A stretch of DNA of 64,000 bases from Macrostomum lignano. Its lineage: Eukaryota. Both the position numbers and the translations under genes were made by a program. Of this stretch, positions 3,441-62,669 are shown in pieces. Position 1 is the stretch's first letter; every line of letters starts with the position of its first letter. The notes below the pieces were generated by a model that was not told the origin of the DNA, did no database searches, and saw nothing but the letters and a program-made list of their open reading frames with translations. The stretch covers positions 306,756-370,755 of the forward strand of contig NIVC01000962.1 in assembly GCA_002269645.1 (NCBI GenBank), written 5' to 3'.

Positions 3441-3920
<480 letters not shown>

Positions 3921-3925
<5 letters not shown>

Positions 3926-6100: not shown

Positions 6101-6110
<10 letters not shown>
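3921..6110. repeat. Tandem array of 8 apparently identical 273-bp units, possibly a non-autonomous Helitron/Helentron-like element
   Basis: An identical 63-aa ORF recurs every 273 bp. Each unit ends in the hairpin AAAGAGCTCGCTTCGCTCGCTCTTT. The array is bracketed by compound (TATC)n tracts. Confidence 0.9.
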
Positions 6111-6400
<290 letters not shown>

Positions 6401-13500: not shown

Positions 13501-16500
13501 GCCAAGTCGGCCGCAGCTGGCGCGGGCTTCAAACGGCGCAACACGTGGCGCAACAAACGGCGCAGCGACTGCCGGCGTTTGTCGACGCCTGGGCCGCCGC
13601 AGGAGCTCCGGTTTGGGCCAACCGCTGCGGCGGTGGCCGCGTTCAGGAGAAAGCGAAGGCCGCGACCGCCGTGGGCAGCCAGCAAGCGGTGATAGTCCAG
13701 CAGCATGGAGCCGCAGGAGGCGGCGGCGGCCTCTCCACTGACAGCCTGGGTGGCCGCTTGGCGAACCAGGCGACAGGTGCGAACCTTGGTAGGAAGGAGT
13801 TATAATTTGATGACCCCGGCAAGAAATGAATTATTACCATTTTTATCATTTACAGATTCCCGTGTAACTTATTGGACTTCAAATCCTATATGACAATCTA
13901 CTACGATCCCAGATCCCAATCTGATCCCAGATCACAATCCGATCCCAGATCCCAATCCGATCCCAGATCCCAATCTGATCCCAGATCCCCATCTGATCCC
14001 AGATCCCAATCTGATCCCAGATCACAATCCGATCCCAGATCCCAATCTGATCCCAGATCCCCATCTGATCCCAGATCCCAATCTGATCCCAGATCACAAT
14101 CCGATCCCAGATCCCAATCTTATCCCAGATCCCAATCCGATCCCAGATCCCAAACCGATCCTAGATCCCAATCTGATCGCAGATCCTAGATCCAAATCCG
14201 ATCCCAGATCCCAAACCGATCCCAAATCCCAATCCGATCCCAGATCCCAATCAAATCCCAGATCCTTCATCCCTCACCTGGAACTTGACATCCGAGCTAA
14301 CAGCGTCGCTGCTCTCGACCCCTTCGGCCATGCGGTCCCAGTAGAAGTCGGGCACAGGCGAGCTCTCGCCCCGGCCAATAAACCCGGCCAGCTCTTCGTC
14401 GACCAGCAGGCGGCCCAGACCGTCGCAGGAGCCGCCGGCGGCAGCTTGGCAAGCGTCCAGCTGGCGGAGCAGCGCCGGTCGAGCCTCCAGGAGACGCGAG
14501 ACGGAGCTGATTGGTTGGGAAAGGAAGAAAAAGACAGGTGAGACATTAATAACAATCGGCAATGATTGACAGGTGTAGCCAGATGTCATCTGGACTCGAA
14601 AATTTACCCTTATAGATGCTTTGCATGTGATTGGCTAAAATCATCAAACTTTTTTTAATAAAATTACTCTTTATACTGTACTTTGGTTTGAATCATACAT
14701 GCGAAACACCCGGCCAAAAATGCCAGACCGAAAAATGCAGACGTAGTACTAATTAGATGACGAGGTATTTAGCCTTGATAACATAGTCACAGTTACTCCT
14801 GCCGTTTACCCAAAAATTACGTCAATTATGGGTTGTTTCTTTTGTAGGCGTTGCAATTTTGGTCAAAAAGCAAGTCGCACGGCCGGTGTAAATCAGAGAG
14901 GGTTGCGCATGTATGGTTTGAATGTAGGTCTAAATATCAATGGAAGCTGAGAGCTCATCTCAGTCATACTTGGCAATGTCTTCCCTATCATCACCATGTA
15001 CCAGATCTATATTTACTAGCTAAGTACCAACCCAATTGGGTATTGGTACTGTCTGCGTCTATCCAGTTATCGATAATGACCCAGGATTATCCTACCTGGC
15101 AACAAGGCATATTTTCAGACTCTGAGATCAGCTCGATGAGCGTTTCGCTCTACTTAGGCTCACTTTTTATTCTAGAGATCTTACTTTATAAAATTACAAT
15201 ATAAAAATAATATTTAAATTTTGCGCGTACCGAATCGCAGTCAGGTAGGCCTCCAACAGCTGACGCGGCACCTCGGCGGAGTCCTCGGCGCTATAGGGGT
15301 CCTCGTTGAAACTCGCCATTGCTTCGTCAGATGCGGCCGGGCCGGCTGACACGAAATGATCGAATGCTTGCGAGTAGCGGCGCTGCATGAAGTAGTACTG
15401 GCCCAGCTCGAAGTGCACCAGGCACCTGCGAATGTGGGAGTTGCATGACCTCATTAGCTAGCTTCTTTGGGGATTCTTACTATGTAGGATTTGGATTCTT
15501 AGATTGGGGATCTGGGTCTTTAGATTGGGGATCTGGGTGTTTAGATTGGGGATCTGGATGTTTTGATTGGGGATCTGGATTCTTAGATTTGGGATCTGGG
15601 TGTTTAGATTGGGGATATGGGTGCTTTGATTGGGGATCTGGATTCTTAGATTGGGGATCTGGGTGTTTAGATTGGGGATCTGGGTGTTTAGATTGGGGAT
15701 CTGGGTGTTTTGATTGGGGATCTGGATTCTTAGATTTGGGATCTGGGTGTTTAGATTGGGGATCTGGGTGCTTTGATTGGGGATCTGGATTCTTAGATTG
15801 GGGATCTGGGTGTTTAGATTGGGGATCTGGGTGTTTAGATTGGGGATCTGGGTGTTTAGATTGGGGATCTAGGTGTTTTGATTGGGGATCTGAATTCTTA
15901 GATTGGGGATCTGGGTGTTTAGATTGGGGATCTGGATTCTTAGATTGGGGATCTGGGTTCTTAGATTGGGGATCTGGAATTTTAGATTTGGGATCTGGAT
16001 TCTTAGATTGGGGATCTGGATTCTTAGATTGGGGATCTGGATTCTTAGATTGGGGATCTGGATTCTTAGATTAGGGATCCAGAATCTTAAGATTGGGATC
16101 CTGGATTCTTAGATTGGGGAACTGTATTCTTAGATTGGGGATCTGGGTGTTTAGATTGGGGATCTGGGTGTTTAGATTGGGGATCTGGGTGTTTAGATTG
16201 GGGATCTGGGTGTTTTGATTGGGGATCTGAATTCTTAGATTGGGGATCTGGGTGTTTAGATTGGGGATCTGGATTCTTAGATTGGGGATCTGGGTTCTTA
16301 GATTGGGGATCTGGAATTTTAGATTTGGGATCTGGATTCTTAGATTGGGGATCTGGATTCTTAGATTGGGGATCTGGATTCTTAGATTGGGGATCTGGAT
16401 TCTTAGATTAGGGATCCAGAATCTTAAGATTGGGATCCTGGATTCTTAGATTGGGGAACTGTATTCTTAGATTGGGGATCTGGATTCTTAAATTGGGGAT

Positions 16501-18787
16501 CTGGATTCTTAAATTGGGGATCTGGATGTCTTGATTGGGGATCTAGATCCCTAGCTTTTAAAGCCTAGAATCCGGAACAACCCAGCCAGTGCAAAGCCGA
16601 GACGCGCACCGCCAATAAGAGTTGTCCACAGGCTCGCAGGCGGACCAGTCAGGCTCAATCTCCGGCTCCGCAAGGGTCGGCACCAGAAAAGCGGCTGGTA
16701 ACGGCCTGGCAACGCAGCCGTCTCCGTCTCGCTGTTGCTGATCTAATTCGCCAATTAGGCATTCGAGACTGCGATCGACTCTGGCCATGAGGTGGCCAGC
16801 GATCTCCTGGGACTGGGCGCAGTGCAGCTCAGTGGACCTGTCCGTGATGCCAGCCACGCCTTGCACCATTGAGCGGAGCGGCTTCTTCACGTAGTTCTCT
16901 TCAACTAGACAGCGCAGGGCCCACCGGTGGTACAGCTGGTACAGCCAGCGGGCGCACGGCCGCAGCCCGTTGTCCGCTGGCGGGCTGTAAGGGTCCGGGA
17001 GACCTGCACAGGCACACAGCCATAGGAACAGGCGGTGAGCCAGTGCTATGGGCAATTTGCGTGCGGTTCTGCCCAGGCGGTAGTGCAGCTGGGCCAGGAT
17101 CTTGGCTGAGAGGCTGAGCAGGACTCGCCACTGCTGCGACTCGCTGCCCTGGTAGGTTGAAGAGATTCTGGGTTATATACCCAATCAGTCTTGGTAGTGT
17201 CTACCCAATCAGTCTTGGTAGTGTCTACCCAATCATTCTTGGTAGTGTCTACCCAATCAGTCTTGGTAGTGTCTACCCAATCAGTCTTGGTAGTGTCTAC
17301 CCAATAACACTTGGTAGTGTCTACCCAACCACACTTAGTAGTGTCTACCCAACCACACTTAATAGTGTCTACCCAATCAGACTTGGTAGTGTCTACCCAA
17401 ACACATGTGGCACAGTCTTCCCAATCATACTTGATACTGTGTCAACAAAATTATCACTATTTACAAAATATCTCTTGGTTCTTTCTCATAATTATCTATT
17501 CATCAATGCATCAATACAAATTGTCAACCCATTGACCCATTCAGTATTTATGATAGTCCACTCAACTTTACATTGATTTTTTCTATCTACTTGTAATTTT
17601 TAACCTAATTATAGGGCCAGCATATAGTAATTTATGATAGTCCACTCAACTTTACATTGATTTTTTCTATCTACTTGTAATTTTTAACCTAATTATAGAG
17701 CCAGTATATAGTAATTTATGATAGTCCACTCAACTTTACATTGATTTTTTCTATCTACTTGTAATTTTTAACCTAATTATAGAGCCAGCATATAGTAATT
17801 TATGATAGTCCACTCAACTTTACATTGATTTTTTCTATCTACTTGTAATTTTTAACCTAATTATAGAGCCAGTATATAGTAATTTATGATAGTCCACTCA
17901 ACTTTACATTGATTTTTTCTATCTACTTGTAATTTTTAACCTAATTATAGAGCCAGCATATAGTAATTTATGATAGTCCACTCAACTTTACATTGATTTT
18001 TTCTATCTACTTGTAATTTTTAACCTAATTATAGAGCCAGTATATAGTAATTTATGATAGTCCACTCAACTTTACATTGATTTTTTCTATCTACTTGTAA
18101 TTTTTAACCTAATTATAGAGCCAGCATATAGTAATTTATGATAGTCCACTCAACTTTACATTGATTTTTTCTATCTACTTGTAATTTTTAACCTAATTAT
18201 AGAGCCAGTATATAGTAATTTAATTTATTAATAAAACATCCAATAATTTAATCATTTTGCTTAATATAATTTGTCCCATTTTGTGTTTTTTAATTATTTT
18301 AATAATAATAATAATATAATTGATTACACCTGCCCCAATTGGGCCAGAGATAGCTATTGTGCAGCACATCTGAAGGCTGTGTATAGCTATTCAGTCCAGG
18401 GACTGGGGGGTCACCACATATAGCCTCAATTACCCCAGCTAATGCTGGCACCCATTTTACAGCTGGGTGAACTGAAGCAATGCAGAGTTAAATGTCTTGC
18501 TCAAAGACACAAATTATTCCAGTAGGATTGGGAATTGAACCCCCAACCTTCAAGTTGTGAGTCCAACACTCTAACCACTAGGCTATAACAAATTATTTTA
18601 TACATAGATAAAACAATAATTTTATAGTACTCACTTGTTCTTTGCCATCATATTGCCTTGAATGATCTAGAAAATGTCGCAAATACTTTAGAAGCTGTTT
18701 ATCAGAGGCTGAGCCAGTATTTAATAAGGAATCCAAATTTTTAGGATTGATTACAAAGTTGAACCAATCTTCATGTGCATGAATCAT
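10578..18787 (-). CDS. INTS8: Integrator complex subunit 8, about 1086 aa. Exons 18635-18787, 16610-17148, 15231-15425, 14278-14506, 12514-13784, 11469-12009, 10578-10910
   Basis: Motifs resemble metazoan INTS8 from memory: N-terminal WFNFVI...HFLDHS (human WFEFLL...QFLEQA), LYHRWALRCLV (LYNRWAIRTIV), PSWLLTRADLAY...ALRCYLEA...RRMARCCELL, and C-terminal YLWDLSLLEIL...ELNSCN...FLRALAGLLF. All six introns are GT-AG with consistent phases (0,2,2,0,2,0). The last acceptor (10911) is the least certain. Confidence 0.9.
10935..11365. repeat. 21-bp minisatellite in INTS8 intron 6
   Basis: Unit CCAACAGCCCTAGCAACAAAC. Confidence 0.95.
12140..12435. repeat. Degenerate about 34-bp repeat built around the palindrome GTCACGTGAC, in INTS8 intron 5
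   Basis: Five exact GTCACGTGAC copies and three one-mismatch variants. Confidence 0.85.
13903..14265. repeat. 18-bp minisatellite in INTS8 intron 4
   Basis: Unit GATCCCAGATCCCAATCT/C. Confidence 0.95.
14746..14828. repeat. Dispersed repeat core shared with 22865-22945 (unclassified transposon family)
   Basis: GTACTAATTAGATG.CGAGG.ATTTAG.CTTGATAA...AGTTACTCCTGCCGTTTACCCAAAA is present at both sites. Confidence 0.8.
15488..16550. repeat. 21-bp minisatellite in INTS8 intron 2, with an internal 337-bp higher-order duplication
   Basis: Unit AGATTGGGGATCTGG(GTGTTT/ATTCTT); identical ORFs at 15903 and 16240. Confidence 0.95.
17170..18220. repeat. 24-bp minisatellite (17170-17400) and 84-bp tandem repeat (about 17545-18220, about 8 copies) in INTS8 intron 1
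   Basis: Unit TAGTGTCTACCCAATCAGTCTTGG; TCCACTCAAC recurs at 17557, 17641, 17725 and onward, with alternating GCCAGCATA/GCCAGTATA variants. Confidence 0.93.
18301..18589 (-). mobile_element. tRNA-derived SINE, apparently full length (about 290 bp), in INTS8 intron 1
   Basis: The minus strand has an A box (TAGCCTAGTGG), a decayed B box (GGTTCAATTCC), a CORE-like central segment (TGTCTTTGAGCAAGACATTTAAC...CAGCTGTAAAATGGG) and a (TTA)n tail. The head aligns with 3377-3440. Confidence 0.8.
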
Positions 18788-21700
18788 TATTATACTTATC
18801 TGCCAATGACTATATTCTATGTTGCTGGAATGTAATAATCATTTACATATATTAAAAATCTATATTTTGATAAAACAACAATGGCTTTAACTCAAATCAA
18901 TAGGGTATATAGACCTACACTATATATGTTGGCATGAAAATTTTAAATAAAATTGTAACCAAGTAATGAACTAACTAAAACAGTCCCACCATAGCTATAT
19001 AATTAGCTATGGGAAGTTATAGATACTTCAATATAAATACTTTGCAGAACATATATATGGTTAAAGGAATGCATATTTCCCCTATATCTAGTTCTTATTA
19101 GGTTGATAAGAAAGTTCTCGCTGTTTCTAGAAAATTCCAGAAACTTTTTTCCAGAATGTTCTGGAACTTTTTTTCCAGAATTACTGAATTACTTTGTTTG
19201 AATTACTTTGTTGAATAACTTTGTTGTTATACTCATGAAATCTCAGTTTGTTGAAATGAAGAGAAAATGGCAAGAACTTTCTTATCAACTAGATATATAT
19301 AATAATATTAGCCACTCAATAATAGAGACTTAAAAGATCATTTGAGACCTTGGTTTAATAGATAATAAGGGGGTAGAGTAGTAGAAATAAATTAATTTTA
19401 CTAGTTTCAAAGCTTTTATGAAAGGAACTCCCTGATATTAGACTTAAGCAATAAAGATTTTGTATAATTAAGGTAGCAAGACCTAATATTAAAATTAATA
19501 TAGTCCTAACTATTTTCTTCTACAAAAATGATACATTAATGAATAAAAGAAAACTATTATCATTGGATTAAATATCATTAAAAGTTTATTGTAATCTATT
19601 GCTTAAACATATCAAAACACAAACTTTGAATAATTGTTTTTATTTCTTATAGGTGCTTTTTAATTAAACTGTTATATTCCTATGAAACCCTAATTATGTT
19701 GCCTACAAACTGTAATCTAAATAGCAGCTATTAGTGCAGTAAACAGACAGACATGCTAATAGATAGATAAGAAGGTAGGCACATAGGTCGGCAGTCTAAA
19801 TTATTGCAATTTGGGTGGCATTTAATTTGGCAATGTTTTTACTTTGTTCATTTTCTTTGCCAATGAACTTTATACTCTATATGATACTATTATTATAATA
19901 GCAATTATACAATAAAATATACATTTAGAACATATATATTAAAGGTTAGATAGACTATTTTTTACCTTAAGACCAGATAGAGATAGAGAACCTAGCATAT
20001 GATTGCAGGTCCAGAAGAGGAGAAGAAAAAAAGAAGAAAGATGAAGAAAGAAAAGGTGAGGACAAGAGAGAGATAAGAGAGAAAGATTAAAGAGTAGGGA
20101 CCTAAGAAGTAAAAATGTTTTTGTATATATATTCTTCACTAAGGAGCCTAGGGACCCTGGGGTTTTAGCAAAAAAATCTTTTGGTATCCAAGGCACAATT
20201 TTTTTAGGGAATTGGCACCCCTAAGCTAGGTCAATATTATATATATATATAAATAGGCCAAGGCTATAGGAAAAATTTAGATATGGCAACAAATATAGTA
20301 TAGCCTAAATATAGGAAAATTTTGGTAGAACTCCTAAAAAATATAATTTTTAATAAGAAAATATTTATATAAACCTTACTTTTAAATAAAACTATTATTT
20401 TTTTGCTTTTAACTTTGCTTTTAATTGGCAATGCTTATTCCTACAGTACTATAGAAATATTAAAATATTAAGAATATTTTCTATTCTTATAGGCCTACAG
20501 TACTGTAAAGATAGGCCTAAACTTTGCTTTTATTTAATATCTATTTTACTATTGAATATTAAGCCTTGTAATAGGTCTATAAAGCTTAATGGGTAATTCC
20601 ACGAGATGACGGTCGTTGGGTTGGAGCAAATAATAATCAGTAATCATACAAAAGACAAACTAAATTGAGACTTTGTGAGTTCTATATTTATGGGCGTGAC
20701 CTCTAGATTGAGATGAGATACATTTTAAAGTCATTTGTCTTACTGTGTTGATTTAGCAGAGAGAAACTTTCGATGACGGTCATTTTTGGTGAAAGTTTAT
20801 GTATCCAACTTTATAACTTAAGTTTAAGATTCCTGCGAATCAGGCAAGTTTTTGTCTCAATTGATCATTAATTGTAGTAAACAATAGCTAGATGAATGGT
20901 TACAAACAATTATTACATTTTAGTAGACAACTTTAACTGTGTTGCACATTTTTTCTTAAATGACGGTCGTTGACTGACGGTCGTTTGTTTCAAAAAACGA
21001 CCTTCAGTTTTAAAAAGTGTATTAGGATGCTCTATTTTTAGATACAATCTTGGTTAAAAGATTGTTTATAATCCATAGTTGTTCATATAAAAACTATAAC
21101 TTGCTTGTCTAACCATAAAATTTATTATACCTGTTTCACATTTCAGATCAAACGTACTTATGCACCTTCAACAAAAACATCACTTCATGATTGCACAACT
21201 CAACATATGATCATAAAGATGGACAGTCCTAATCTATTCAAGAATTCAAAGAATAGAATATAACAATTAACAAAACCAAAGGCAAATACAGATTATTTGT
21301 TAGGCAATAAGCAGTAGCACCAATGGATAGTAAAAACTTGAGTCTAGTTAGACTACTTATACTGAAGATTGGGGCATGTGTTAAGGTGCATTGCAAACTA
21401 AAGTGGAGAGTTCTAGGTGCATGGTTAGTAATTGGAACAACCTTTTTAAAAGTTCAGGCTGAAAATGATTTTAAGGTATCAAACAAGTAATTGACAGTAT
21501 ACATTTTTAATAAAAGACTTGAATTCCACTATATTTTTCTTTACAATCAAAACTGTAAAAACTTTGAAAGAGAAATTGAATAAGTAATTCACATTAAAAA
21601 AGACATGATTTTAGAATATCAGTAAATTCAGTTTTTTGTATAAAATTTAGGAATAAATGATAGTAATTCAGGTTTTATAAAGATCAACAAATTTCAGAAT

Positions 21701-22119
21701 ACTAGAAAATGATGGTCGTTAAAAAAATGATGGTCGTTTTTAACACTTAAAAAAGGGAAGTCAAACTTTTTAAAATAAAAAATTATGATAGATAGAACTA
21801 TATTAGATCATAAAACTTTATAATTTCAGTCTTTAGATATAAGAAAGAAAGATTTTTATTATTTATGCACTTGATGCATTATGTTTATTAACTTTTTTTC
21901 TAATTGAAAACAAGATTAAACTTTTTATAATGTCCCGCGGGACATTTAAAATCTTGCAAGGGTACCATGATCAAAACAAAATATATATACCTAGAGGTAG
22001 ATAAATGTGTATGAAACTACATAAAAATGAAACTATACATAATTATATGCAAAATGAAATATTCACATTTGCAAATAATTTTTAAAAAAATTTCTATACC
22101 TTTGATGACCCTATCATGG

Positions 22120-22662
22120 AAGGCAGTGCTTATCCCCACGGTACCGTAGGAATAATTTCTGTCTTATTCCAACGGTACCGTGCGAATAATTTTCTGCTTA
22201 TCCGCACGGCACACTGAGGAGATAGCTGCCCTATCTTCTACATATGCCATGCGAATAATTTTCTGCTTATCCGCACGGCACACTGACGAGATAGCTGCCC
22301 TACACGTCCTCTGTTTTATTCCCTCTGCAAGCTTTACTAGCTGCCCTATCTGCTACATATATTTGCTGTGCGTGAATAGTTTATAGCTTATTGAAAGGGA
22401 ATTCATTTGTTACTACACAAAAAAATTCTTTCTCATAGTAAAGTCGTTAAATCTTTATTTCTTTAGAACAAATGTTCAAGCCAAGTTAAGTTGTTATACT
22501 GCACTCAAATCGTATGTACTAAACTTCCCACACGGCTTATGTAGAAGATAGGGCAGCTATCTCGTCAGTGTGCCGTGCGGATAAGCAGAAAATTATTCGT
22601 ACGGTACCGTTGGAATAAGACAGAAATTATTCCTACGGTACCGTGGGGATAAGCACTGCCTT
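22120..22662. mobile_element. MITE with about 120-bp near-perfect terminal inverted repeats
   Basis: AAGGCAGTGCTTATCCCCACGGTACCGTAGG... is mirrored by ...CCTACGGTACCGTGGGGATAAGCACTGCCTT; internal partial duplication; no clear target-site duplication. Confidence 0.85.
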
Positions 22663-24126
22663 ATAATTTTGTCTCTTATATATCTATATTCGTGAATAAA
22701 TTGCATGAGTTTACATAAACGAAAAAAAAGAAAGTTGGAAGGAAACTAAACGGTTGGAGACCTGATTGCAGCGCATGGGCATTTTGGCGGACGGCGTCCG
22801 GCGCGGATCTAATACGGCGCGGCGCGGCGCGTACGGCGCGCGGCGATTAGTACGGCGCGGCGCGGTACTAATTAGATGCCGAGGCATTTAGGCTTGATAA
22901 GACAGTCATAGTTACTCCTGCCGTTTACCCAAAACTGCGTTAATTTTGCTTTAGAGTTTCTTTCATAGGTAAGTCATTTCACAGCGTGGCGCAGGTTGTG
23001 TAGGCGTCTGGCGTACTTAAGCCATGCGCTGCAATAGGGGTTGGAGATATTTGCTTCTGGCTTTGTGTATTTATAAATGCAACATATTAGGTCCGGAACT
23101 TTCAGAAAAATCCTAGCATTATAATAAATTATAATTAATAAGACATTTACATTACACTTCCATGCGAAGCTTGATGACATAATTAGTTATTCCGATTTAT
23201 ATATTATATATATTGGCAGACGAAATGACTATATCGTATATTGGCAGACGAAAAGGCGGCAGACGAAATGACTGTCAACCTATATTTGGCTCTTTTAGCT
23301 AGGCCCTATAGGCATGCCACTTTTCATCTTGCTTTATGTGTGCATGTGTATGAGTGCTTTTGTGCATAAATTTTGCAAATAAAATGATATATTTATGGCA
23401 ATGTTATGTTACAATTTTGTCAATACTGGTTGCAAATGACAAAAGTGATTAACATTTTATTTTAAATCAGGCTGTTACATAGGCCACCTTATATTTCTTC
23501 TTTAGTTTAATTCAAAAAAAGTAATTAAAAAGCTCAATAATAGTTTTGTACAATATTATTATTGTAATAAATACTTATTTAAACAATTTAGATCTAATAA
23601 AAAATTGTATAAAAACTAGCAACTATTAGGTCCTAACTGCAACAATCAATATATTTTGTGGCATATAGTAAAACAAAATTAAAAGAAGTAGCATTGAATA
23701 TATCATTATTAGAATGCCTAACTAACATTGCTATACAAAAATCATAATATAGATAATATATTCAAAATAAGTTATTCTTTTTTATTGAAAACATAGGCCT
23801 AGTGCATTACATTATTGCATTTCTGCAATATTATTGCATTTTTCTAGGACAAGTATATCAAAATCTACTTAGGTTGGTAATGAAGTTAGTAAGTCACTAT
23901 TCCATTCTGCCATTAACATAGATGGCTATAGGCAATGAGATCTATATATAAACAAATGATAGTTTAACATATATCTCTTTGGAAGATACTTTGTTATAGT
24001 TATAACAAATGACTTGATATATCCTTTTGCAATCCAAAAATTTGGAGTTTATCCATGCTATTTAGTGCTATTAGTTACCTAGGCATTTAGTTTTTTTACT
24101 TAGTCTTGGGTGTCAGTTTCTGTCTA

Positions 24127-24940
24127 CAAGGGTTGTCCCAGAAATAGCTGAAAAACCAGTACATAGGCTGACTGTGATATTCAAATTTGATGCAACTTGT
24201 GTCATAAGTAGAAAAAATCCAATGGTGGTTTTGCTTTTTAAATGGGGTAAAATGTCAATTCATTCAAAAGTTGTGCCTATAATTAGAACAAAAGATAGGG
24301 GGTAAAGTTATATGAAGTCAAAAGGTCTGCAAAGTCAGTCACACAGCATCGCCATTGCCCTTGACTGATGACTTTTCGACAAATTCACCCCTCAACCTGC
24401 AGCCTGCACATACATGCGCAACCTTGGGATTCACCCGGCCGTTCCTATTGGCAACACACACATGTAAGTCGCTATTGGTTGAGAGCAGTCATGTGACTAC
24501 TATTCCGTCCAATAGCGACTTACATGTGTGTGTTGCCAATAGAAACGGCCAGGTGAATCCCTAGGTTGCGCCCAAGCATGAGCCTGCAGCTGTTCTGCTT
24601 GTGCTTCTACTTCAGATTAGCTTCTGCTTTTTTCAAGAGCTTATATGATCTTTTGTTTCTTTTGCTTCTTTGTTTGCTTTTCTTTTCAAATTGATGGTTC
24701 TGACTAAACATTAAAATTTTAGTCTATGGCCAGCATAGTAGGCTCAACTTGGTGTTACTCTACCCCTTACCCTTTGTTCTAATTATAGGCATAACTTTTG
24801 AATGAATTGACATTTTTACCCCATTTAAAAAGCAAAACAACCATTGGATTTTTTTCTACTTATGATGCAAGTTGCATCGAATTTGAATATCACAGTCAGC
24901 CTCTATACCAGTTTTCCCACTATTTCTGGGACAACCCTTA
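24127..24940. mobile_element. Old MITE with about 170-bp decayed inverted arms, flanked by TA (Tc1/mariner-type)
   Basis: TA|CAAGGGTTGTCCCAGAAATAG...CAAAAGTT is mirrored by AACTTTTG...CTATTTCTGGGACAACCCTTA|TA. Confidence 0.8.
24416..24571. mobile_element. Nested palindromic element with about 65-bp arms
   Basis: GCGCAACC...CTATTGGCAACACACACATGTAAGTCGCTATTGG is mirrored by CCAATAGCGACTTACATGTGTGTGTTGCCAATAG...GGTTGCGC. Confidence 0.75.
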
Positions 24941-25514
24941 TATATCTCTAGTCCTTGGTATGAGCTTCTATTATTCTACTTATAGACCTTGGTATGAGCT
25001 GCTGCCTCCCTTTGACTTATTTGTCTTAGCTAAAAGGTAGTCCAAAGACACAATGGAAGGCAAGCATTGTCTATATCAGATACTACTAATCCCTGAGAAG
25101 CCCACATAGGCTAAGCACAGGGCTAGTCAGGGAAGACCTATCTGCAATGTGGTCTTCAGTGGTAACTGGTAACAGTCTCATTTGGTAGCCCAGAGAAACT
25201 GGATGAGCTGTGGGATATTCTTGGGCTAGCAAGCATAGTACAAAGATGGGTTAGGCCTAAGATAGTTGAGCTAGTCTCGGTTGAAGGCTGGGCAGTGGCA
25301 GACAAAATGCTTGGCATTTTCATTCTTGAAGTTATAGAAGGGGCAGAGTTCACTCTGGCCTGGTAATGCCTGGCAAGGCAACCATGACCTATGAAGTTCA
25401 CAGTAAGAACGCGGATGTTTTTTTATTTTGGTTCAAAGGGATTCTCCGCAGCTTGAGGGATAGATTGGGCACTGCCACTTGGGATTGGCGACAGTTTGGA
25501 ATGCCATCCCATTT

Positions 25515-25790
25515 GTATACATTGGGGGGTAGAGGTTCTGATGGGAGTGGGTGTACATTAGGGGGTAGAGGTTCTGATGGGAGCGGGTGTACATTAGGGG
25601 GTAGAGGTTCTGACGGGAGCGGGTGTACATTAGGGGATAGAGGTTCTGATGGGAGCGGGTGTACATTAGGGCGTAAAGGTTCTGATGGGAGCGGGTGTAC
25701 ATTATGGGGTTGAGGTTCTGATGGGAACGGGTGTATGTTAGGAGGTAGAAGATCTGACGGGAGTGGGTGTACATTGGGGGGTAGAGGTTC
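25515..25790. repeat. 36-bp minisatellite
   Basis: Unit TACATTAGGGGGTAGAGGTTCTGATGGGAGCGGGTG. Confidence 0.9.
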
Positions 25791-25799
25791 ACACAGGTG

Positions 25800-26030
25800 T
25801 GTAGGTGCAGGATATCCGCCCAGTCGTTAATCTGATTATTAATGACCGCGGCGCGGATGGGGGCCAGAGGCACGGGACCAAGGAGCAAGCTGGAGCTACC
25901 CGTCTTAGCGAGGGAGTCAGCGAGCTCGTTACCTTTGAAACCGGCGTGTCGTGTTCCTCCAATTTGTAGTGGTGGTGTGGCACAGGGCCTGCAAGGCAGC
26001 CTGACTGTCAAACCGAACCCACACAAAACC
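25800..26030 (-). pseudogene. RNase H domain remnant of a non-LTR retrotransposon
   Basis: FDSQAALQAL in one frame and HAGFKGNELADSLAKTG...GPVP in another. These are two conserved RNase H motifs, separated by a deletion or frameshift. Confidence 0.7.
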
Positions 26031-26119
26031 CATTGCATGCGCTAACCGGAGCACCCAAAAGCTGCCTTGAGGAGATTCCCTGAGCACCACAGGCAACACA
26101 CAGGAAGCACAGATTCGCA

Positions 26120-26341
26120 ATGAAGTTCCTTGGTCGCCGATTCGTGAAGGCGCCCAAATACTTGACGCCTCGCCGGCTCGAGGCCGTGTCCAACTGGTCC
26201 TTCACCGCCGGCACCTATGCGGCCTCGGCCATCGTCCTGCTGTTGTTCGTGACCGACTGGCGGGTCACCAACCGCTTCATCCCAATCTACGGCAGGAAGT
26301 TCGCCGAGATGGACAAAGCCGAGGAGGAGCGGCTGAACTAG
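26120..26341 (+). CDS. UQCR11: Cytochrome b-c1 complex subunit 10 (QCR10/UQCR11), single exon, 73 aa
   Basis: MKFLGRRF...NWSFTAGTYAASAIVLLLFVTDWRV...IPIYGRKF resembles FLGPRY...NWVPTA...VWATDWR...VPYINGKF; one transmembrane segment; AATAAA near 26389. Confidence 0.85.
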   Translation: MKFLGRRFVKAPKYLTPRRLEAVSNWSFTAGTYAASAIVLLLFVTDWRVTNRFIPIYGRKFAEMDKAEEERLN

Positions 26342-27919
26342 CGAGCTTGACTAAACCAATAGCAGATTTGACGCTGTAAACAAACTTTAATAAACTAATT
26401 TAGTTCATACTACTAACCGAAGTAGCATTAGTAGGAAGTGTTTTTCTTCAAACTACAATCTAAGTGATGCGTGTTTTTAACGGCAGACAAATTAGTGTAG
26501 TAAATGATACTTTGTCATCAACCGAAATTCTTGTGTACTGAGTGTCCAGTCCAGGCCTAGATAAAAATAAAATGCGATTGAAACAACAGAGTTCACATCC
26601 ACTTTTGCTTAGCTCTAATCGAATGGCATTGAAGTTTTTTATTTTTATTGAAAGTATGTAGATATTAATTTGTGAAATTAGCTACCGATATGTGAAATTA
26701 GCATCCCAATATGTGGAATTAGCATCCCATATGTGAAATTAGCATCCCATATGTGAAATTAGCATCCCATATGTGTACTTAGCATAGCAATTGTGAAATA
26801 AAACTGTCTTCTTTAAAATTAATTTCAGAAACGCGCCAAAATTTACAGAATTATGAGCCATTAATATTTTGTTAAACTCGGTGAGTACATTATGGGTGCT
26901 GTTTATAAAGAGTTTATCCCATTTATTAATAAATCCCATGATGACAAACTCACATTTGAAATTTCCGGGCATCATTGCAGTGCAGATTTTACACTTGATT
27001 ATTTTGTCTTTACTTTTTTGTTTTATTATCTAATATGAGTACATCATTATGCGTTACCTTTTACTTTGTTTTGCTAGTTATTATTCTACAATTCGTTACG
27101 CCATTAATCAGTGCTGCAGTGCAGTCCCATTCACACATGATACGGGTTATGAGATCTGATTATAATTCTATGCACCCTTGTTGTATGTAAGCAAAGTTTA
27201 CCTCAGGATTCAAATTTTAATGACAACAAAATATTTAATCTATTTTAGGCAATTCGAGGACTGCACTACTGATGGTAAGTAGTAGGATTTTTTACCTAGA
27301 TATATTCTCATAGTAGCACAATGATGACAAAACACAATTTGAAGCAAAGATCACCGCGTCGAGCTGACTCGGGTTGATGATCTCGAACTTCTGTTTTAGC
27401 TTTACCTAATTTATGTAAAACTGAATCTTTATTTTAATTTTATTGTTTGTTATAATTAATTTTATAAACCAGCTTTGACTTGAGCTCGGCTTCGCTCGTG
27501 TAGTCTTTGATCCGTGATACAGGTTATGAGAGCTGAGTGCTACTGCTGTGTTTCATTTGCTCTGTCTATTTAGGTAGCAAATTCATGCGGTGTGACACTA
27601 GATTCCAATCTAATTATACTTTGCTTTTTGTGGAAATTTTTAGACTGAGATCAGCTTCCAAGATGATGGATGATGCTGCAACCTGCGAACCCGAGTGACC
27701 GTTGACAACTGTATAGTGTTTATCTTCTTTACAAATATACCAATGGCATAGTTTTTTTGGAGAGCTTTTTTCTCTACTAAGATTTTGTGCTCTAAATTTT
27801 TTGTGTGCGTTTCACTTTTGTGTGGAGTACGGCATGTTAACGTTGATAGGTAAAGCATTGAAGGCTTGGGTGAACTTATAATTGGAGACATGCTTGCAGC
27901 GAAGGTTAAAGGAACGAAG

Positions 27920-28515
27920 AGATCATTGAAGGGTTGGTTGGGTGAAGGGATCATTGAAGGGTTGGGTGGGTGAAGGATCATTGAAGGGTTGGGTGAAGGG
28001 ATGAATGAAGGGTTGGTTGGGTGAAGGGATCATTGAAGGGTTGGTTGGGTAAATGGATCATTGAAGGGTTGGTTGGGTGAAGGGATCATTGAAGGGTTGG
28101 TTGGGTGAAGGGGTCATTGAAGGGTTGGTTGGGTAAATGGATCATTGAAGGGTTGGTTGGTTGAAGGGATCATTGAAGGGTTGGTTGGGGGAAGGATCAT
28201 TAAAGGGTTGGTGGGTGAAGGGATCATTGAAGGGTTGGTTGGGTGAAGGATCATTGAAGGGTTGGGTGGGTGAAGGGATCATTGAAGGGTTGGGTGGGTG
28301 AAGGGATCATTGAAGGGTTGGGTGGGTGAAGGGATCATTGAAGGGTTGGGTCGGTGAAGGGATCATTGAAGGGTTGGTTGGGTGAAGGGATCATTGAAGG
28401 GTTGGTTGGGTGAAGGGATCATTGAAGGGTTGGGTCGGTGAAGGGATCATTGAAGGGTTGGTTGGGTGAAGGGATCATTGAAGGTTTGGGTGGGTGAGGG
28501 ATCATTGAAGGGATG
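27920..28515. repeat. About 24-bp G-rich minisatellite upstream of BTF3
   Basis: Unit approximately GAAGGGATCATTGAAGGGTTGGTTGGGT. Confidence 0.92.
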
Positions 28516-28569
28516 ATTGATAAGTTAAATAAATCTCTGTGTTTTTGATATGCGAAAGATTCAATTTAT

Positions 28570-28708
28570 ACTACTGAGAAAAAGTAGGCGAATAAAGATT
28601 TGAATTGTAAAATCTCTCACATAGCCCGAGAAATGTCGCCATAAAAGAAGCGTCTGTGCCCACATAGAGTCGACGTTAAAATCTTATTCGTCTACTTTTC
28701 TCAGTAGT
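28570..28708. mobile_element. Small MITE-like element with about 31-bp inverted arms, upstream of BTF3
   Basis: ACTACTGAGAAAAAGTAGGCGAATAAAGATTT versus AAATCTTATTCGTCTACTTTTCTCAGTAGT. Confidence 0.65.
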
Positions 28709-28819
28709 CTGAATTGAAAATCTCCATGATACAAGGTATCACTGTAAGGTTAGTAGAGCTTAGAATAATCGATCTATACCCATATTTCAGTGCCAAGAGA
28801 ACACACAGCAGTGACTAGC

Positions 28820-29564
28820 ATGGACCGGCAGGCCAAGATAGAGAAGCTGAAGGCGCAGGTGGACTCTGTCCGCATCGGCGGCAAGGGCTCCGCCCGCCGC
28901 AAGAAGAAGGTTCTGCACAAGAACACTGGCACTGACGAGCGGAAGGTCACCGCCACGCTGAAGAAGCTGGGCGTCAATTCCATACCCGGCATCGAGGAGG
29001 TGAACATGTTCAAGGATGACAACGAGGTCATTCACTTCAACAATCCCAAGGTGCAGGCCTCTCTGCAGGCCAACACCTTCGCCATCACTGGCCAGTCTGA
29101 GACCAAGCGGCTCACCGAGCTGCTGCCCACAGTCTGGAACCAGATGGGGCCGGACAACTTCGCCAACCTCAAGAGGCTGGCTACTGGTGCCGGGGGCTTT
29201 GGTGAGTGCTGCAGTAGCTGCGCTTTTTGCTGGGCTCTGGCGTTCACTTATCCTTCACCCATCCCTTCACCCATTCTTCACCCATTCACCCATCCCTTCA
29301 CCCATCCCTTCACCCATTCACCCATCCCTTTACCTATCCCTTTAACCATCCCTTCACTCATCCCTTCACTCATCCCTTCACTCATCCCTTCACTCATCTA
29401 TCCGCCCTCGTCACCCCGTAGGCCTGTCTCAGCCAGAGGAAGGCGCCGCTGGAGGCGCTGTCGACAGCGCCGGGACGGCGGCCTCGGGCGCTGCCGCCGC
29501 TGCCGACGACGACGACGTGCCGGAGCTGGTCGGCAACTTCGACGAGGCCGCCAAGACGGAGTGA
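28820..29564 (+). CDS. BTF3: Transcription factor BTF3 / nascent polypeptide-associated complex beta, 174 aa. Exons 28820-29201 and 29422-29564
   Basis: [53 protein letters not shown]; C-terminus [17 protein letters not shown]. Phase-1 GTGAGT/CGTAG intron. Confidence 0.96.
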
Positions 29565-29964
29565 AATTCGGGGCAGACTTGTTGTGACCGCTCGCGCCCT
29601 ACTACTAGTATAGGATTCGTCAGTTATTATTCTGTTAAGCAAAGCGCGCAAACTTTAGTGCGCTTCTGTCCCAATGCATTCATCATTCTAATATCTGTCT
29701 GAGTCGGATTTTTGTTCCCGAATATTTTGCTAAATTTTGCTTGCCTTAGTTATTTCTCATCTGAGCTGGTGTCACAGCGGCTAAAGGGTTCCCCTCTTTG
29801 CGATTCAGGTCCCCTATATGTGTGTGCTTAGCATTGTACTTTTAGCTCCTATTTTCTCTTATTGTCCAGGTCGTTGAACCTAGTCAACGAGTTACTGAGT
29901 TACCCAATTTTTTGTATAACTAATTGTGGTTAAAAAGAGTGTCCTCCGCAATCCCATTGGATGA

Positions 29965-30290
29965 GATTAAATCCCATAGGGATGAGATTCTTTTGGATTT
30001 AAATCTTATAGGGATGAGATTCTTTAGGATTTAAATCCCATAGGGATGAGATTGTTTGGGATTCAAATCCCATAGGGATGAGATTGTTTGGGATTCAAAT
30101 CCCATAGGGATGAGATTGTTTGGGATTTAAATCCCATAGGGATGAGTGAGATTCTTTGGAGTTTAAATCCCATAGGGATGAGATTGTTTGGGATTTAAAT
30201 CCCATAGGGATGAGTAAGATTCTTTAGGATTTAAATCCCATAGGGATGAGATTCTTTGAGATTTAACTCCCATAGGGATGAGATTGTTTG
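29965..30290. repeat. About 32-bp minisatellite containing palindromes
   Basis: Unit AAATCCCATAGGGATGAGATTGTTTGGGATTT. Confidence 0.9.
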
Positions 30291-30589
30291 TGTTAACCGA
30301 CCCGACTGCAGTTGAGTGGAGAATCTGTGCAATGTTCTGAGCAACCCCCCCTCCGTGTCTGTCTGTTCCATCAGTAATTTAAAAATAAACTCAAATTAAA
30401 ACAGGTTTTGAGTACATGTTGTGCTTTTGTAACTGTCTTGAGTCCGGGGCTTAAATGTGGTAAATATATACGCTAACAGTAAATGAATTGTTGTTGTAGC
30501 CTGCTGTGGGGTCAGACTTTTGGCAATAATGCTTTTTGAGATTTTTTAATAGGAATAAAATGGGTCACTTTTTTTTTACCTTTCCCTAC

Positions 30590-31170
30590 CCCTTCCCTGT
30601 TCCCTGTTACCTCTCCCCGCTTCCCTGTCCCGATCCCCCTCTTCCTTGTCCCTCTTCCTTGTCCCCTCTTCCCTGCTCCTCTCCTTCCTCTTCATTCTCT
30701 CTCTTCCCTGCCCCTCTTCCCCCCTCTTCATTCTCTCTCTTCCCTGCCCCTCTCCCCCCTCTTCATTCTCTCTCTTCCCTGCCCCTCTTCCCCCTCTTCA
30801 TTCTCTCTCTTCCCTGCCCCTCTTCCCCCTCTTCATTCTCTCTCTTCCCTGCCCCCCTTCCCCCTCTTCATTCTCTCTCTTCCCTGCCCCCCTTCCCCCT
30901 CTTCATTCTCTCTCTTCCCTGCCCCCTTCCCCCTCTCCATTCTCTCTCTTCCCTGCCCCCCTTCCCCCTCTTCATTCTCTCTCTTCCCTGCCCCTCTTCC
31001 CCCTCTTCATTCTCTCTCTTCCCTGCCCCTCTTCCCCCTCTTCATTCTCTCTCTTCCCTGCCCCTCTTCCCCCTCTTCATTCTCTCTCTTCCCTGCCCCT
31101 CTTCCCCCTCTTCCCTTTCTTTCCCGTCCTCTTCCCTGCCCTCTCCCCTGTCCCTCTCCCCAGTCCCATT
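30590..31170. repeat. 35-bp CT-rich minisatellite upstream of KRI1
   Basis: Unit CTTCCCTGCCCCTCTTCCCCCTCTTCATTCTCTCT. Confidence 0.93.
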
Positions 31171-31286
31171 CCCCTAATCGCACACACTAATATTATCGCA
31201 CACATTAAGCTAATATTCTTAATTAATGATCCGCAAGACTGTCTGGTCGCTATCCGATGCATGCACCCACTGCCGGCCGCACAGAC

Positions 31287-34200
31287 ATGCTGAAAATAAA
31301 CAAAAAGTTTGCTAAAAAATACGACGAGTATCGTCGCAAAGAGGAGCTGCAGAAGTGTGAGTAGGAGCTGGGTTTTTGGTGAGAAGAGGGGATTAGAATT
31401 GCGGTAAAGCAGAAAGTAAAAAAAATTATCAACGGATAAACATTAAGGGGATCAGAGAGAGACGGTGAGAATAAGAAATTGGGGGCAGTGGCACACAGGG
31501 GGCAGCGGCACACAGTGGGCAGTGACGCACAATCAGGCAGTGGCACACATGGGGGCAGTGACGCACAATCAGGCAGTGGCACACAGGGGCAGTGACACAG
31601 GGGGGCAGTGACGCACAATCAGGCAGTGACACACAGGGGGGCAGTGACACTCAGGGGGGGGCAGTGACGCACAATCAGGCAGTGGCACACATGGGGGCAG
31701 TGACGCACAATCAGGCAGTGGCACACAGGGGCAGTGACACAGGGGGGCAGTGACGCACAATCAGGCAGTGACACACAGGGGGGCAGTGACACTCAGGGGG
31801 GGGCAGTGACGCACAATCAGGCAGTGGCACACATGGGGGCAGTGACGCACAATCAGGCAGTGGCACACAGGGGCAGTGACACAGGGGGGCAGTGACGCAC
31901 AATCAGGCAGTGACACACAGGGGGGCAGTGACGCACAATCAGGCAGTGGCACACATGGGGGCAGTGACGCACAATCAGGCAGTGGCACACAGGGGCAGTG
32001 ACACAGGGGCAGTGACACACAGGGGGCAGTGACACAGGGGCAGTGACACACAGGGGGGCAGTGGCACACAGGGGCAGTGACACAATCAGGCAGTGACACA
32101 CAGTGGGCAGTGACACACAGTGGGCAGTGACGCACAGGGGGCAGTGACACACGGGGCAGTGACACTCGGGGGGGGGAGTGACGCACAGGGGGCAGTGACA
32201 CACGGGGCAGTGACGCACAGGGGGCAGCGGCACACAGGGGAGGGCAGTGGCACACAGGTGTTAGACACACAATCAGGCAGTGGCACACAGTGGTTAGACA
32301 CACAATCAGGCAGTGGCACACAGGGGTTAGACACACAATCAGGCAGTGGCACACAGTGGGCAGTGACGCACAGTGGGCAGTGACGCACAGTGGGCAGTGA
32401 CGTACAGGGGGCAGTGACACACAGGGGGCAGTGACGCACAGTGGGCAGTGACACTCGGGGGGGAGTGACGCACAGGGGCAGCGGCACACAGGGGAGGGCA
32501 GTGGCACACAGGGGTTAGACACACAATCAGGCAGTGGCACACAGGGGTTAGACACACAATCAGGCAGTGGCACACAGGGGTTAGACACACAATCAGGCAG
32601 TGGCACACAGGGGTTAGACACACAATCAGGCAGTGGCACACAGGGGTTAGACACACAATCAGGCAGTGGCACACAGGGGTTAGACACACAATCAGGCAGT
32701 GGCACACAGGGGTTAGACACACAATCAGGCAGTGGCACACAGGGGTTAGACACACAATCAGGCAGTGGCACACAGTGGGCAGTGACGCACAGGGGGCAGT
32801 GACACAGGGGGGCAGCGGCACACAGTGGGCAGTGACGCACAGGGGGCAGTGACACAGGGGGCAGTGACACACAATCATCCTTAATCCCCCCAGCAGTCAA
32901 GGACAAATACGGAGATGTAAAGCTGAGCCAGGCAAAGTCAGCCACAGAGGCTGCGGACGCCTCAGAGTCATCCGAGTCCTCTGAGTCCAGCTCAGACTCG
33001 GAGCCCCAGGGCTGGACCCCTGGCACAGAGGCCGGCTTTCTCCGGGTCTACGCGGCCCTTCAGTCTGGGGACTCCCGGCTGTACGATCCCAAAGTCAACT
33101 GGTTCCAGGAGGACGAGGAGGCCAGCGATGAAGCTGAGGATGCTGGAAGCGATGAGGCGGAGAAGGAAGAAAAACACAAGCCGATGTACTATAATGAGTT
33201 TCATAGGAAATTCCTGCTCGAAGGAGCCTAGTAAGTGTTCTAAAAGTGCATTGAAAGCTATTAAAAGTACATTAGAGAACACACCAATAACAAGTGTTTG
33301 CGTTTGTGTCTTCAAGACTTTTTTAATTCATTGCTTTGCATTTCCAACTGTGACAGCAAGGCCGGCGAGGACTCCGCAACTGCCGCTGCGCCCGATGCCG
33401 AGGTGCGGGAGAATCTCCGAGAGGCTGAACGGATACGGGACTCGCTGGCTAGGGCTCAGTGAGTGCTGCTGTGTACTGCTCGCCTTCTCTCCACTCTCTC
33501 CCCTCCGCCCTCTCCCTCCGCCCTATCCCTCCGCCCTATCCCTCCGCACTCTCCCTCCGCCCCTTCTATTAGGGTGAGCCAAAAGTTTCCGGAATTTTTT
33601 AGAATCGAACTTTTAGTTAATTTTTGTCTATGGAAAAGCTTAAAAACAGCAACCATCTACTATGCTGTTGGCCAGCCTTATCATCACTCTTTAGCTTAAC
33701 ATTGCTCAGTTTCCCAGACCCTGCCTACTTAAGCCAGCAAACGCATCCAATGGAACTGCCAAGAACTGAATGGCGAGCAATTCTGCTCAACCACTTTCAT
33801 GCGGGACGCAACGCAGCAGAGGCACATCGCGAGTTGTTGCAGCTGATGGGCCCACATGCACCCTCCAAGTCGTCGGTGTACGACTGGTTCTCTCGCTTTG
33901 CTGAGGAGAACTATGAGCTGAAGGACAAGCCGAGGTCAGGCCGACCCCCTGCTGCTGATGGCGATGCCGTTCTCCAAGCCCTTGAGGACAATCCGGATTA
34001 CAGCGTGCGCAAGCTGTCAGCCGCTACTGGGGTGTCCTATGGCACGGTCCGGCGGAGCCTGCATGCTGCGGACAAGGTGCCGAAGAAGCCAACTCTAGTG
34101 CCCCATGAGCTGACACCTCAGCAGCTGAGAGCCAGGGTGGATGTGGCAACTTCGAATCTTCGCCAGGCCGGTTCGCCAAACTTTCTCAAGTCGATAATCG

Positions 34201-58235: not shown

Positions 58236-58408
58236 TGTAGTGTGCGTACGCACAGTATGGTACGCCCGGGCAGTCTGATTGGCTGCGGAGTGGGGTGGGT
58301 GCCGCCACCCCAATTCTAACTCCATAATATATAGACGCGTGCCCAGCGCGGCGAGATTTGTAAGAGTTTGGCTACACAGCAAACACGGCCTCTGACTCAG
58401 TTACTACA
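58236..58408 (+). repeat. 5' LTR (173 bp)
   Basis: TGTAGTGTGCG...GTTACTACA, a direct repeat of 62670-62841; contains a TATATA-like box. Confidence 0.97.
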
Positions 58409-58440
58409 ATGGCGTCGCAAGAACTGAACCTTTAAAAATC

Positions 58441-62443: not shown

Positions 62444-62669
62444 ATTTGAAATCCTGCAATGACTGAAATTAACTGACTTTCTTTTCCGTAATATGCGGAC
62501 TGAAGTTTTTTTACGTTTTTGCTGCATTCAATTCAAATATTTTATTTCCTCAATATTTTAATCTCCATTTTCAATGCGCATCATCGTGTGAATCTTTCGA
62601 ACTTTGTATTTTCGAGTTACGTTTAAATCGATTTTCTTCTCTCTCAGTCTCTATTCGAAAGGGGAGAGA

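Follow-up and report, generated by a model that had tools for sequence, protein, structure and literature searches.

The window analysed here is a stretch of 64,000 nucleotides from the genome of the flatworm Macrostomum lignano (contig NIVC01000962.1, positions 306,756 to 370,755 of the forward strand). It carries on its minus strand the 5' end of a gene named INTS8 from Pfam TPR_INTS8 hits, which lies in a domain deficient in the dinucleotide CpG. The domain comprises INTS8 intron 1, exon 1 and ~6.6 kb of spacer, and ends ~700 bp before a divergent UQCR11-like gene. A first-pass annotation had described it as a sharply bounded region of ~8 kb (17160-25400) almost erased of CpG. The local CpG deficit is real and highly non-random, and it is patchier than first described.

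The M. lignano assembly Mlig_3_7 (NIVC00000000; PMC5730564) holds three copies of the locus because the DV1 line has additional large chromosomes, and duplicated blocks with identity of at least 95% that total 180 Mb (PMC5730564). The 73-amino-acid open reading frame (ORF) of the UQCR11-like gene is encoded on 3 contigs of assembly GCA_002269645.1, and the CpG-poor block sits between the same two genes on three contigs (398, 419 and 161 kb). The copies are designated W (the window, also L003; window 16120-36341 is 100% identical to NIVC01000962.1:322,875-343,096), L001 and L002. CpG-free backbone is common to W and L002 at 17882-20590 and to W and both other copies at 19490-20590, 23039-24309 and 24991-25517. 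Divergence among the backbone copies is 2-3% over aligned bases (for W and L001 at 19.5-20.6 kb, 0.6%), and L001 and L002 have the same CpG-free profile as the window. A foreign, organellar or contaminant insertion is ruled out by the presence of the block in 3 contigs between the same genes and by INTS8 exon 1 within it. The features of the locus are listed below in window coordinates (o/e, observed/expected ratio of CpG unless stated otherwise; GC3, GC content at third codon positions; SINE, short interspersed nuclear element; MITE, miniature inverted-repeat transposable element).

16558-17148, minus strand: INTS8 exon 2, GC 0.62, GC3 0.72, 44 CpGs; CpG-normal left boundary.
17149-18634, minus strand: INTS8 intron 1, zero CpG.
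17178-17440: 24-bp minisatellite in INTS8 intron 1.
17546-18222: 84-bp x 8 tandem array in INTS8 intron 1.
~18330-18590: SINE-like segment (tRNA/CORE-like) in INTS8 intron 1, with box-B-like GGTTCAATTCC; identified by eye only.
18635-18787, minus strand: INTS8 coding exon 1, 51 codons, MIHAHEDWFNFV...KEQ followed by a GT donor.
18788-20590: CpG-free single-copy backbone with 2 CpGs, GC ~0.28; L002 ~97% identical at aligned bases, L001 aligned from 19490.
20591-22119: segment present in W and L001 (99.3% identical), absent from L002.
22120-22662: foldback or MITE-like element in the window copy only; 132-nt terminal inverted repeats, 97% complementary; CpG o/e ~1.
22760-23039: CG-rich insertion in the window copy only, with run GGCGCGGCGCG at 22788-22863; family relative at 14746-14848.
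23040-23264: CpG-bearing patch in all three copies, with a repeated GGCAGACGAAA motif.
23265-24349: second CpG-free backbone stretch, in all three copies; 1085 nt, 0 CpGs against 22.5 expected from base composition.
24125-24942: foldback element, arms of ~190 nt.
24416-24478 and 24509-24571: arms of the palindromic core of this foldback, absent from L001 and L002; 8 CpGs.
24943-25517: right transition zone, o/e 0.09-0.2; CpG density climbs from 25410.
25518-26341, plus strand: CpG-normal right flank, with a 36-bp minisatellite at 25518-25790.
~25800-26040, minus strand: retroelement RNase H fragment in the right flank.
26120-26341, plus strand: UQCR11-like gene, 73-amino-acid intronless ORF (Pfam UCR_6-4kD, PF08997), divergent from INTS8.

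The counts reported initially, three CpGs in 17160-20580 and none in 23281-24349, are exact; the three lie at 18678, 19119 and 19789 (o/e 0.04, GC 0.295). The Poisson probability of finding at most 3 CpGs in the non-tandem segment 18223-20590 at an o/e of 0.83 is 2e-14, and that of finding no CpG in 23281-24349 is 1.4e-8. CpG-free gaps extend over 17143-18677, 18679-19118, 19120-19788, 19790-20601, 21154-21716 and 23265-24349. The deficit is specific to CpG since GpC has an o/e of 1.15-1.84 in the CpG-poor stretches. In a profile of 400-bp bins with tandem repeats masked, no bin outside the domain has a CpG o/e below 0.47; the 24 AT-rich bins there (GC at most 0.45) range from 0.47 to 1.39 with a mean of 0.86, versus 0-0.2 in backbone bins inside (Mann-Whitney p=6e-6). 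The deficit persists after tandem masking (p ~1e-14). Low GC alone is insufficient to explain it, as the first-pass annotation had argued, because DNA equally poor in GC elsewhere has an o/e of ~0.86; the AT-rich control used for that argument, at 56.9-58.2 kb, does retain CpGs (o/e 0.9). Part of the control DNA adjoining 58.2 kb is repeat.

Near-complete erasure is a correct description of the backbone stretches, which are extreme, and not of the whole 8.2 kb, a mosaic that has 99 CpGs (o/e 0.45). The single-copy CpG-free backbone totals ~4.2 kb and is broken by younger transposon insertions with CpGs; CpG-normal patches lie at 20602-20998, 22139-23264 (o/e 0.8-1.7) and 24350-24569. The bounds are also less sharp than proposed. 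The right edge is gradual, with an o/e of 0.1-0.5 at 25.0-25.6 kb, and the left edge can be placed only between 17148 and ~18223 because the tandem units in intron 1 are simply without CpG. These arrays (17178-17440 and 17546-18222) contribute 940 of the 3421 bases of 17160-20580 (27%). The start of a CpG-rich exon 2 at 17148 was borne out (44 CpGs, o/e ~0.8).

The GC content of the domain is low, 0.23-0.35, and its GC and AT skews switch sign along its length. Unique non-coding DNA is generally AT-rich at the M. lignano loci sampled, and the bias of the domain is just somewhat stronger. CpG decay alone does not account for the drop in GC from ~0.5 to 0.3, because loss of all CpGs costs only a few percent GC. 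The ratios of TpA, TpG and CpA, suggested initially as a check, turned out uninformative, being all ~1.0 as in controls: the o/e values in 17160-20580 are 0.99 for TpG, 1.07 for CpA and 1.06 for TpA, and the AT-rich control has 0.94 for TpG and 1.12 for CpA.

Coding sequence within the domain has the same character. Exon 1 of INTS8 has a GC of 0.33, a GC3 of 0.275 and a lone CpG at 18678, and it is kept in L002; exon 2 continues its reading frame from an acceptor AG at 17150-17149 of the minus strand. The difference between a GC3 of 0.275 with 1 CpG in exon 1 and a GC3 of 0.72 with 44 CpGs in exon 2 points to a long-standing regional mutation regime, which appears to override codon usage in exon 1. 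The first exon of PGAP1 at another M. lignano locus (L006 4986-~5125) is AT-rich too. A search of 5.8 billion proteins with 240 amino acids from INTS8 exons 1 and 2 gave no match at E<=1e-3. Even the annotated M. lignano INTS8 was missed, although the UQCR11-like protein of the same contig is in the collection, and exon 1 gained no support from other species. Examination by eye of the six frames of the domain revealed no plausible coding remnant, a stop occurring about every 15 codons.

The annotated INTS8 gene range extends to window 18823, 1 nt past an acceptor-like ttccAG, and the start of the BTF3 gene (window 28793) is 2 nt past tttcAG. Such sites may mark spliced-leader acceptors, trans-splicing being found in 38.8% of M. 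lignano genes (PMC5730564). Transcription from a promoter shared with UQCR11 might run through the DNA upstream of INTS8 exon 1, which would then be an outron or an intron of the 5' untranslated region (UTR). The one acceptor-like site in favour of the outron is not conserved in L002, which has ttcatg at this place (L002 3300).

Comparison of the three copies reveals that CpG decay continues in the domain. Changes were polarised by the majority among W, L001 and L002, and 26.3-36.3 kb served as flank. Transitions affect 6/28 ancestral CpG positions of the domain versus 33/870 of its non-CpG G/C positions (5.6x, p=8e-4), and 14/317 versus 50/1396 in the flank (1.2x, p=0.5). CpG transitions thus differ between domain and flank (p=0.003), while the rates at non-CpG G/C are alike (3.8% and 3.6%). 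The patch 23040-23264 supplies most ancestral CpG sites of this test. In pairwise comparisons, 11/84 and 8/45 CpG sites of the domain differ, which is 13x and 8x background, the flank having 2.4x and 1.4x. After normalisation to G/C sites, the pairwise ratios are 3.9-6.1x in the domain and 1.4-1.6x in the non-coding flank. The pairwise changes at domain CpG sites comprise 17 transitions and 2 transversions, the transition bias that the first-pass annotation had named as a check. Mutation is AT-biased in both regions and would bring GC to an equilibrium of ~0.17 in the domain and ~0.35 in the flank. A rough equilibrium from the polarised counts gives a CpG o/e of ~0.58/k, or ~0.10 at k=5.6, close to the value observed.

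Most patches that carry CpGs are insertions present in only one or two of the copies, so that CpG content tracks residence time in the block. The segment 20591-22119 is a younger insertion, being present in W and L001 and not in L002. Its CpGs are gathered at 20602-20998 around repeated GACGGTCGTT, and its part 21023-21422 is partly decayed (o/e 0.1); over the whole segment, W and L001 differ at 3/32 CpG-site positions versus 0.3% at the remaining ones. Decay of transposon copies in place is seen at other loci as well. The palindrome element has 6 CpGs in the aligned part of its young W copy, all 6 of which are TG/CA in the copy at L006 6211-6347, within the CpG-erased PGAP1 intron 1. A second repeat has 3 CpGs at L004 2541-2655, outside erased blocks, and 3/3 are decayed in the copy at L007 22280-22394, in the block upstream of a gene for an E2 ubiquitin-conjugating enzyme. 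A control pair chosen without any old copy inside a block, W 22865 (young, in the domain) and W 14746 (older, outside), has 4/5 CpGs kept at 27% divergence. The initial proposal of a local CpG-specific decay over the INTS8 5' end that stops at exon 2 is in agreement with hypermutability confined to the domain, with the decay of transposon copies and with the CpG-poor exon 1; the continuous domain that it envisaged is replaced by a patchwork.

Nine further M. lignano loci (L004-L012), reached through homologues of a gypsy polyprotein and members of their cluster, reveal that CpG-poor islands recur. In the window and these loci, the AT-rich non-tandem bins are bimodal: 21/160 have an o/e below 0.2, a trough follows at 0.2-0.3 and the main mode is at 0.6-1.2. 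The window and ~212 kb of other loci contain non-tandem CpG-free gaps of 400 nt or more in 4 places only, each at most 650 bp from the start of a coding sequence. Recurrence, which the first-pass annotation had left to be checked, was found at three further places, all gene 5' ends, and the blocks there measure 1-2.5 kb.

Block 1, NIVC01000962.1:323,900-332,200: the INTS8 domain.
Block 2, L004 5369-6327 on contig NIVC01000416.1: upstream of an ankyrin-repeat gene, beginning 119 bp from its ATG.
Block 3, L006 5219-7732 on contig NIVC01004271.1: PGAP1 intron 1; CpGs return 12 nt before the exon 2 acceptor.
Block 4, L007 22613-23345 on contig NIVC01000010.1: 637 bp upstream of the ATG of the E2 ubiquitin-conjugating enzyme gene.

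Random placement over the 232 kb of annotated loci would bring the 4 blocks within 650 bp of one of 11 coding sequence starts with p ~9e-4, or 0.003 without INTS8, the 650-bp tolerance having been picked after the data were seen. No erased block is found at 7 gene starts, those of UQCR11, BTF3, Kri1, Frizzled, a CUB-domain gene and two small genes. Erased blocks make up ~4% of the sampled non-tandem DNA, ~95% of which is CpG-normal. Transposons as such are not the target, because gypsy elements at ten places in the window and L004-L012 have an o/e of 0.8-1.1 along their full length and the gene-free, transposon-rich locus L012 has no erased block.

The domain is probably the mutational footprint of a discrete block at the gene 5' end that is CpG-methylated in the germline. 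In this scheme the DNA of the block would be CpG-methylated in the M. lignano germline, and deamination of 5-methylcytosine (5mC) to thymine would convert CpG to TpG/CpA several-fold faster than other C/G mutations occur. Under an AT-biased mutation pressure, old sequence in the block would then settle at a CpG o/e of ~0.05-0.1. Transposons would enter the block with a normal CpG content and decay afterwards, and the domain would be a patchwork because inserted elements begin CpG-normal and decay later. Three components of this account are deduced from sequence data: 5mC as the presumed cause, its likely action in the germline, and 5'-proximal non-coding DNA as its probable target, which might be a first intron, a trans-splicing outron or an upstream spacer. 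The first-pass annotation had set the domain apart from whole-gene-body methylation, in accordance with later INTS8 introns and exons that have an o/e of 0.5-1.4, the depleted part being the 5' end.

Several observations weigh against a germline methylation footprint. The events are few, 6 polarised CpG transitions and 17 pairwise ones, and 4 cases among 11 gene starts are a small basis for a 5'-end rule. Retrotransposon genes led to the sampled loci, which do not represent the genome at random. CpG sites of the non-coding flank are themselves somewhat more variable than other sites, 3.3x before normalisation per G/C site; the contrast between domain and flank is therefore quantitative and not absolute. 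There is no TpG/CpA excess, and one classical signature of deamination is thereby gone, although such an excess is not expected if old products decay further under a strong-to-weak (G/C to A/T) bias. Methylation near or over a promoter or first exon is also opposite to the canonical invertebrate pattern, in which the start region is spared.

Among other explanations, a chimeric or contaminant join, or a mere effect of CpG-less tandem repeats and low GC, is extremely improbable. Tandem arrays do form 27% of the first CpG-free stretch and the GC is 0.23-0.35, but the deficit survives tandem masking and DNA of equal GC elsewhere is near-normal in CpG. A join is excluded because the backbone is CpG-free in all three copies, which stand on independent long contigs between the same genes with an INTS8 coding exon inside; the refutation by long sequences that the first-pass annotation had envisaged thus failed. 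It is unlikely that the composition is a fossil, with old single-copy DNA having lost its CpGs in a more broadly methylated ancestor, nothing special happening today and other DNA being CpG-normal only since it is young. The abundance of young DNA agrees with such a history: tandem repeats occupy 39% of the window and transposons gave rise to much of the remainder, long terminal repeat (LTR) elements and tandem repeats represent 21% and 15% of the genome (PMC5730564), the CpG-bearing patches of the domain are young insertions and the AT-rich control near 58.2 kb is partly repeat. A fossil does not account for decay that has continued since the copies split, at 5.6x in the domain versus 1.2x in the flank, nor for the CpG-site differences within the insertion restricted to W and L001. 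Families with young copies have members stripped of all CpGs in erased blocks, and an o/e of 0.65-0.89 persists in AT-rich non-coding DNA of the flank (26.8-27.9 kb) whose age is no less than that of the three-copy split.

A CpG-specific process other than 5mC is quite unlikely. It could be selection against CpG in 5' regulatory DNA, an outron or first-intron RNA, as for avoidance of a CpG-binding factor, or deamination associated with transcription. The position of all four blocks at gene 5' ends would suit either, and an INTS8 annotation that starts 1 nt past ttccAG, in a species where 38.8% of genes are trans-spliced (PMC5730564), is compatible with an upstream outron; L002 lacks this site and has catg there. 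Transcription-associated deamination is not CpG-specific, whereas non-CpG G/C transitions are as frequent in the flank as in the domain, and the skews change sign along the domain. Selection fails to explain neutral transposon copies in which all CpGs have become exactly TG/CA. Methylation or heterochromatin directed at transposons, for instance guided by Piwi-interacting RNA (piRNA), seeded by the SINE-, MITE- and foldback-like elements and spreading from them with an incidental link to gene starts, is improbable. The domain does hold several transposon-like elements and a few repeat families are common to erased blocks at different loci. Its youngest MITEs nevertheless have an o/e of ~1, Ty3/gypsy elements at ten places keep 0.8-1.1 and the mariner-like element of the window 0.6-0.65, most erased backbone is unique within the ~300 kb sampled, and the transposon-rich, gene-free L012 is without an erased block.

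Germline methylation of 5' blocks would share features with known systems and differ from each of them. As in the mosaic methylation of invertebrates such as the honey bee, there are CpG-normal and CpG-depleted classes of DNA, DNMT1 and DNMT3 are present and there is very little 5mC overall. In the honey bee, methylation affects about 1% of CGs, in a small set of housekeeping genes (PMC9246332), and the M. lignano genes concerned look like housekeeping genes too (INTS8, the E2 ubiquitin-conjugating enzyme, PGAP1). Unlike the mosaic pattern, the depleted class of M. lignano is non-coding and lies at or before the first GC-rich coding exon, in a first intron, an upstream spacer and a tiny exon 1. 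Canonical gene-body methylation depletes exons and spares the start, whereas in M. lignano exon 2 onward and the later introns have an o/e of 0.5-1.4 (0.6-1.5 in PGAP1 downstream of exon 2). Holometabolous insects have a 5'-biased gene-body methylation in which mainly the 5' coding exons are CpG-depleted. The signal of M. lignano is likewise concentrated towards the 5' end, in some of the broadly expressed genes of a scarcely methylated genome, but CpG is normal again at the first GC-rich exon, at most 12 nt (PGAP1) or 6 nt (INTS8) from the exon 2 acceptor.

With vertebrates the M. lignano domain shares the chemistry of 5mC deamination and the higher CpG content of younger transposon insertions. 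The vertebrate arrangement of a depleted genome with unmethylated promoter islands is inverted, M. lignano having small depleted islands at gene 5' ends. Fungal repeat-induced point mutation (RIP) also generates sharply bounded AT-rich blocks by C-to-T mutation. It acts on duplicated DNA and leaves a TpA excess with a CpA/TpG deficit, unlike the single-copy backbone of M. lignano, where TpA is ~1.0 and CpA/TpG ~1.0-1.1; young repeats are the least mutated parts of the block, and the organism is an animal. A RIP-like hypermutation was rejected on the values of TpA (1.06), CpA (1.07) and TpG (0.99) and on a backbone without a second copy in the sampled sequence.

Other properties of the locus and window deserve mention. 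An Rfam scan of the domain gave no tRNA for the SINE-like segment, and just sub-threshold microRNA (miRNA)-like, weak U4-like and chance tmRNA fragment matches; part of the segment (18308-18445) has a 76% relative in L006. The near-perfect palindrome at 24416-24571 (63-nt arms, 95% complementary) matches mir-249 and mir-3149 well below the Rfam gathering scores, and these are probably hairpin look-alikes rather than miRNA genes because the palindrome belongs to a dispersed repeat family. The 24-bp minisatellite of intron 1 measures ~260 bp in the window and ~1.4 kb in L002 (865-2253), a rapid change in array length. The kinship of the three copies is itself mosaic. In the spacer (window 19490-21721) W is 99.3% identical to L001 and ~97% to L002; in the downstream flank (26342-35698) it differs from L002 at ~0.5% and from L001 at ~3.6% of aligned bases. 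This implies, as judged from the alignments, that the duplicated chromosomes of DV1 have exchanged sequence by recombination or gene conversion.

The tandem repeats of the window are mostly minisatellites with units of 12-36 bp, and their large share follows from a genome rich in such repeats. An array of 2.8 kb (50291-53118), nearly all purine on the plus strand, is built of 36-bp GAAGGGAGAGAG-type units and has no C in two 1-kb bins (51001-53000). At 3914-6112 a 273-bp unit is repeated 8.1 times at 100% identity with long (ATCT)n microsatellites on both sides; it resembles a very recent amplification, or else the assembly may have collapsed or expanded there. At 58236-62842 lies a young Ty3/gypsy LTR retrotransposon (174-bp LTRs 99.4% identical, CpG o/e ~1.0) with a 984-codon ORF for gag, protease, reverse transcriptase and RNase H followed by integrase ORFs. 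Its nearest located M. lignano relatives are 48-57% identical, and an identity of 88% is reached by one UniRef entry that has no contig. The Kri1 gene region contains, at 33624-34772, a mariner/Tc1-like transposase ORF that looks intact (382 codons, TTG start) and is unannotated publicly. An exact look-up of the mariner-like and gypsy ORFs of the window returned no record of either.

Wasik et al. reportedly obtained bisulfite data for M. lignano in 2015. The species retains DNMT1 and DNMT3 and has low 5mC; according to reviews, the genomic pattern of 5mC is unknown for free-living flatworms (PMC11292947, PMC9246332, PMC10658182). On the M. lignano methylation pattern, the literature searched yielded only statements of "low levels". 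A bolder and rather doubtful proposal is that DNMT1 and DNMT3 might be aimed at short 5' non-coding blocks ending at the first GC-rich coding exon, and not at gene bodies or transposons generally, a geometry that would be undescribed in any animal. Bulk 5mC would be very low even if such a system were fully active, because the blocks have already lost nearly all their CpGs.

If methylated 5' blocks exist, they would provide precise coordinates for probing what the sparse 5mC of M. lignano does, and a targeting rule, 5'-proximal non-coding DNA up to the first GC-rich exon, that is unlike gene-body and transposon models. Targets that are nearly CpG-free would be a simple reason for the low bulk 5mC. 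The regional mutation regime is strong enough to make a coding exon of a housekeeping gene AT-rich. Should methylation prove absent, some new explanation would be required for a CpG-specific decay restricted to gene 5' ends. As a flatworm model, M. lignano retains both DNMT1 and DNMT3 and is open to transgenesis, and the blocks amount to a cheaply testable prediction of where a flatworm may place its sparse 5mC.

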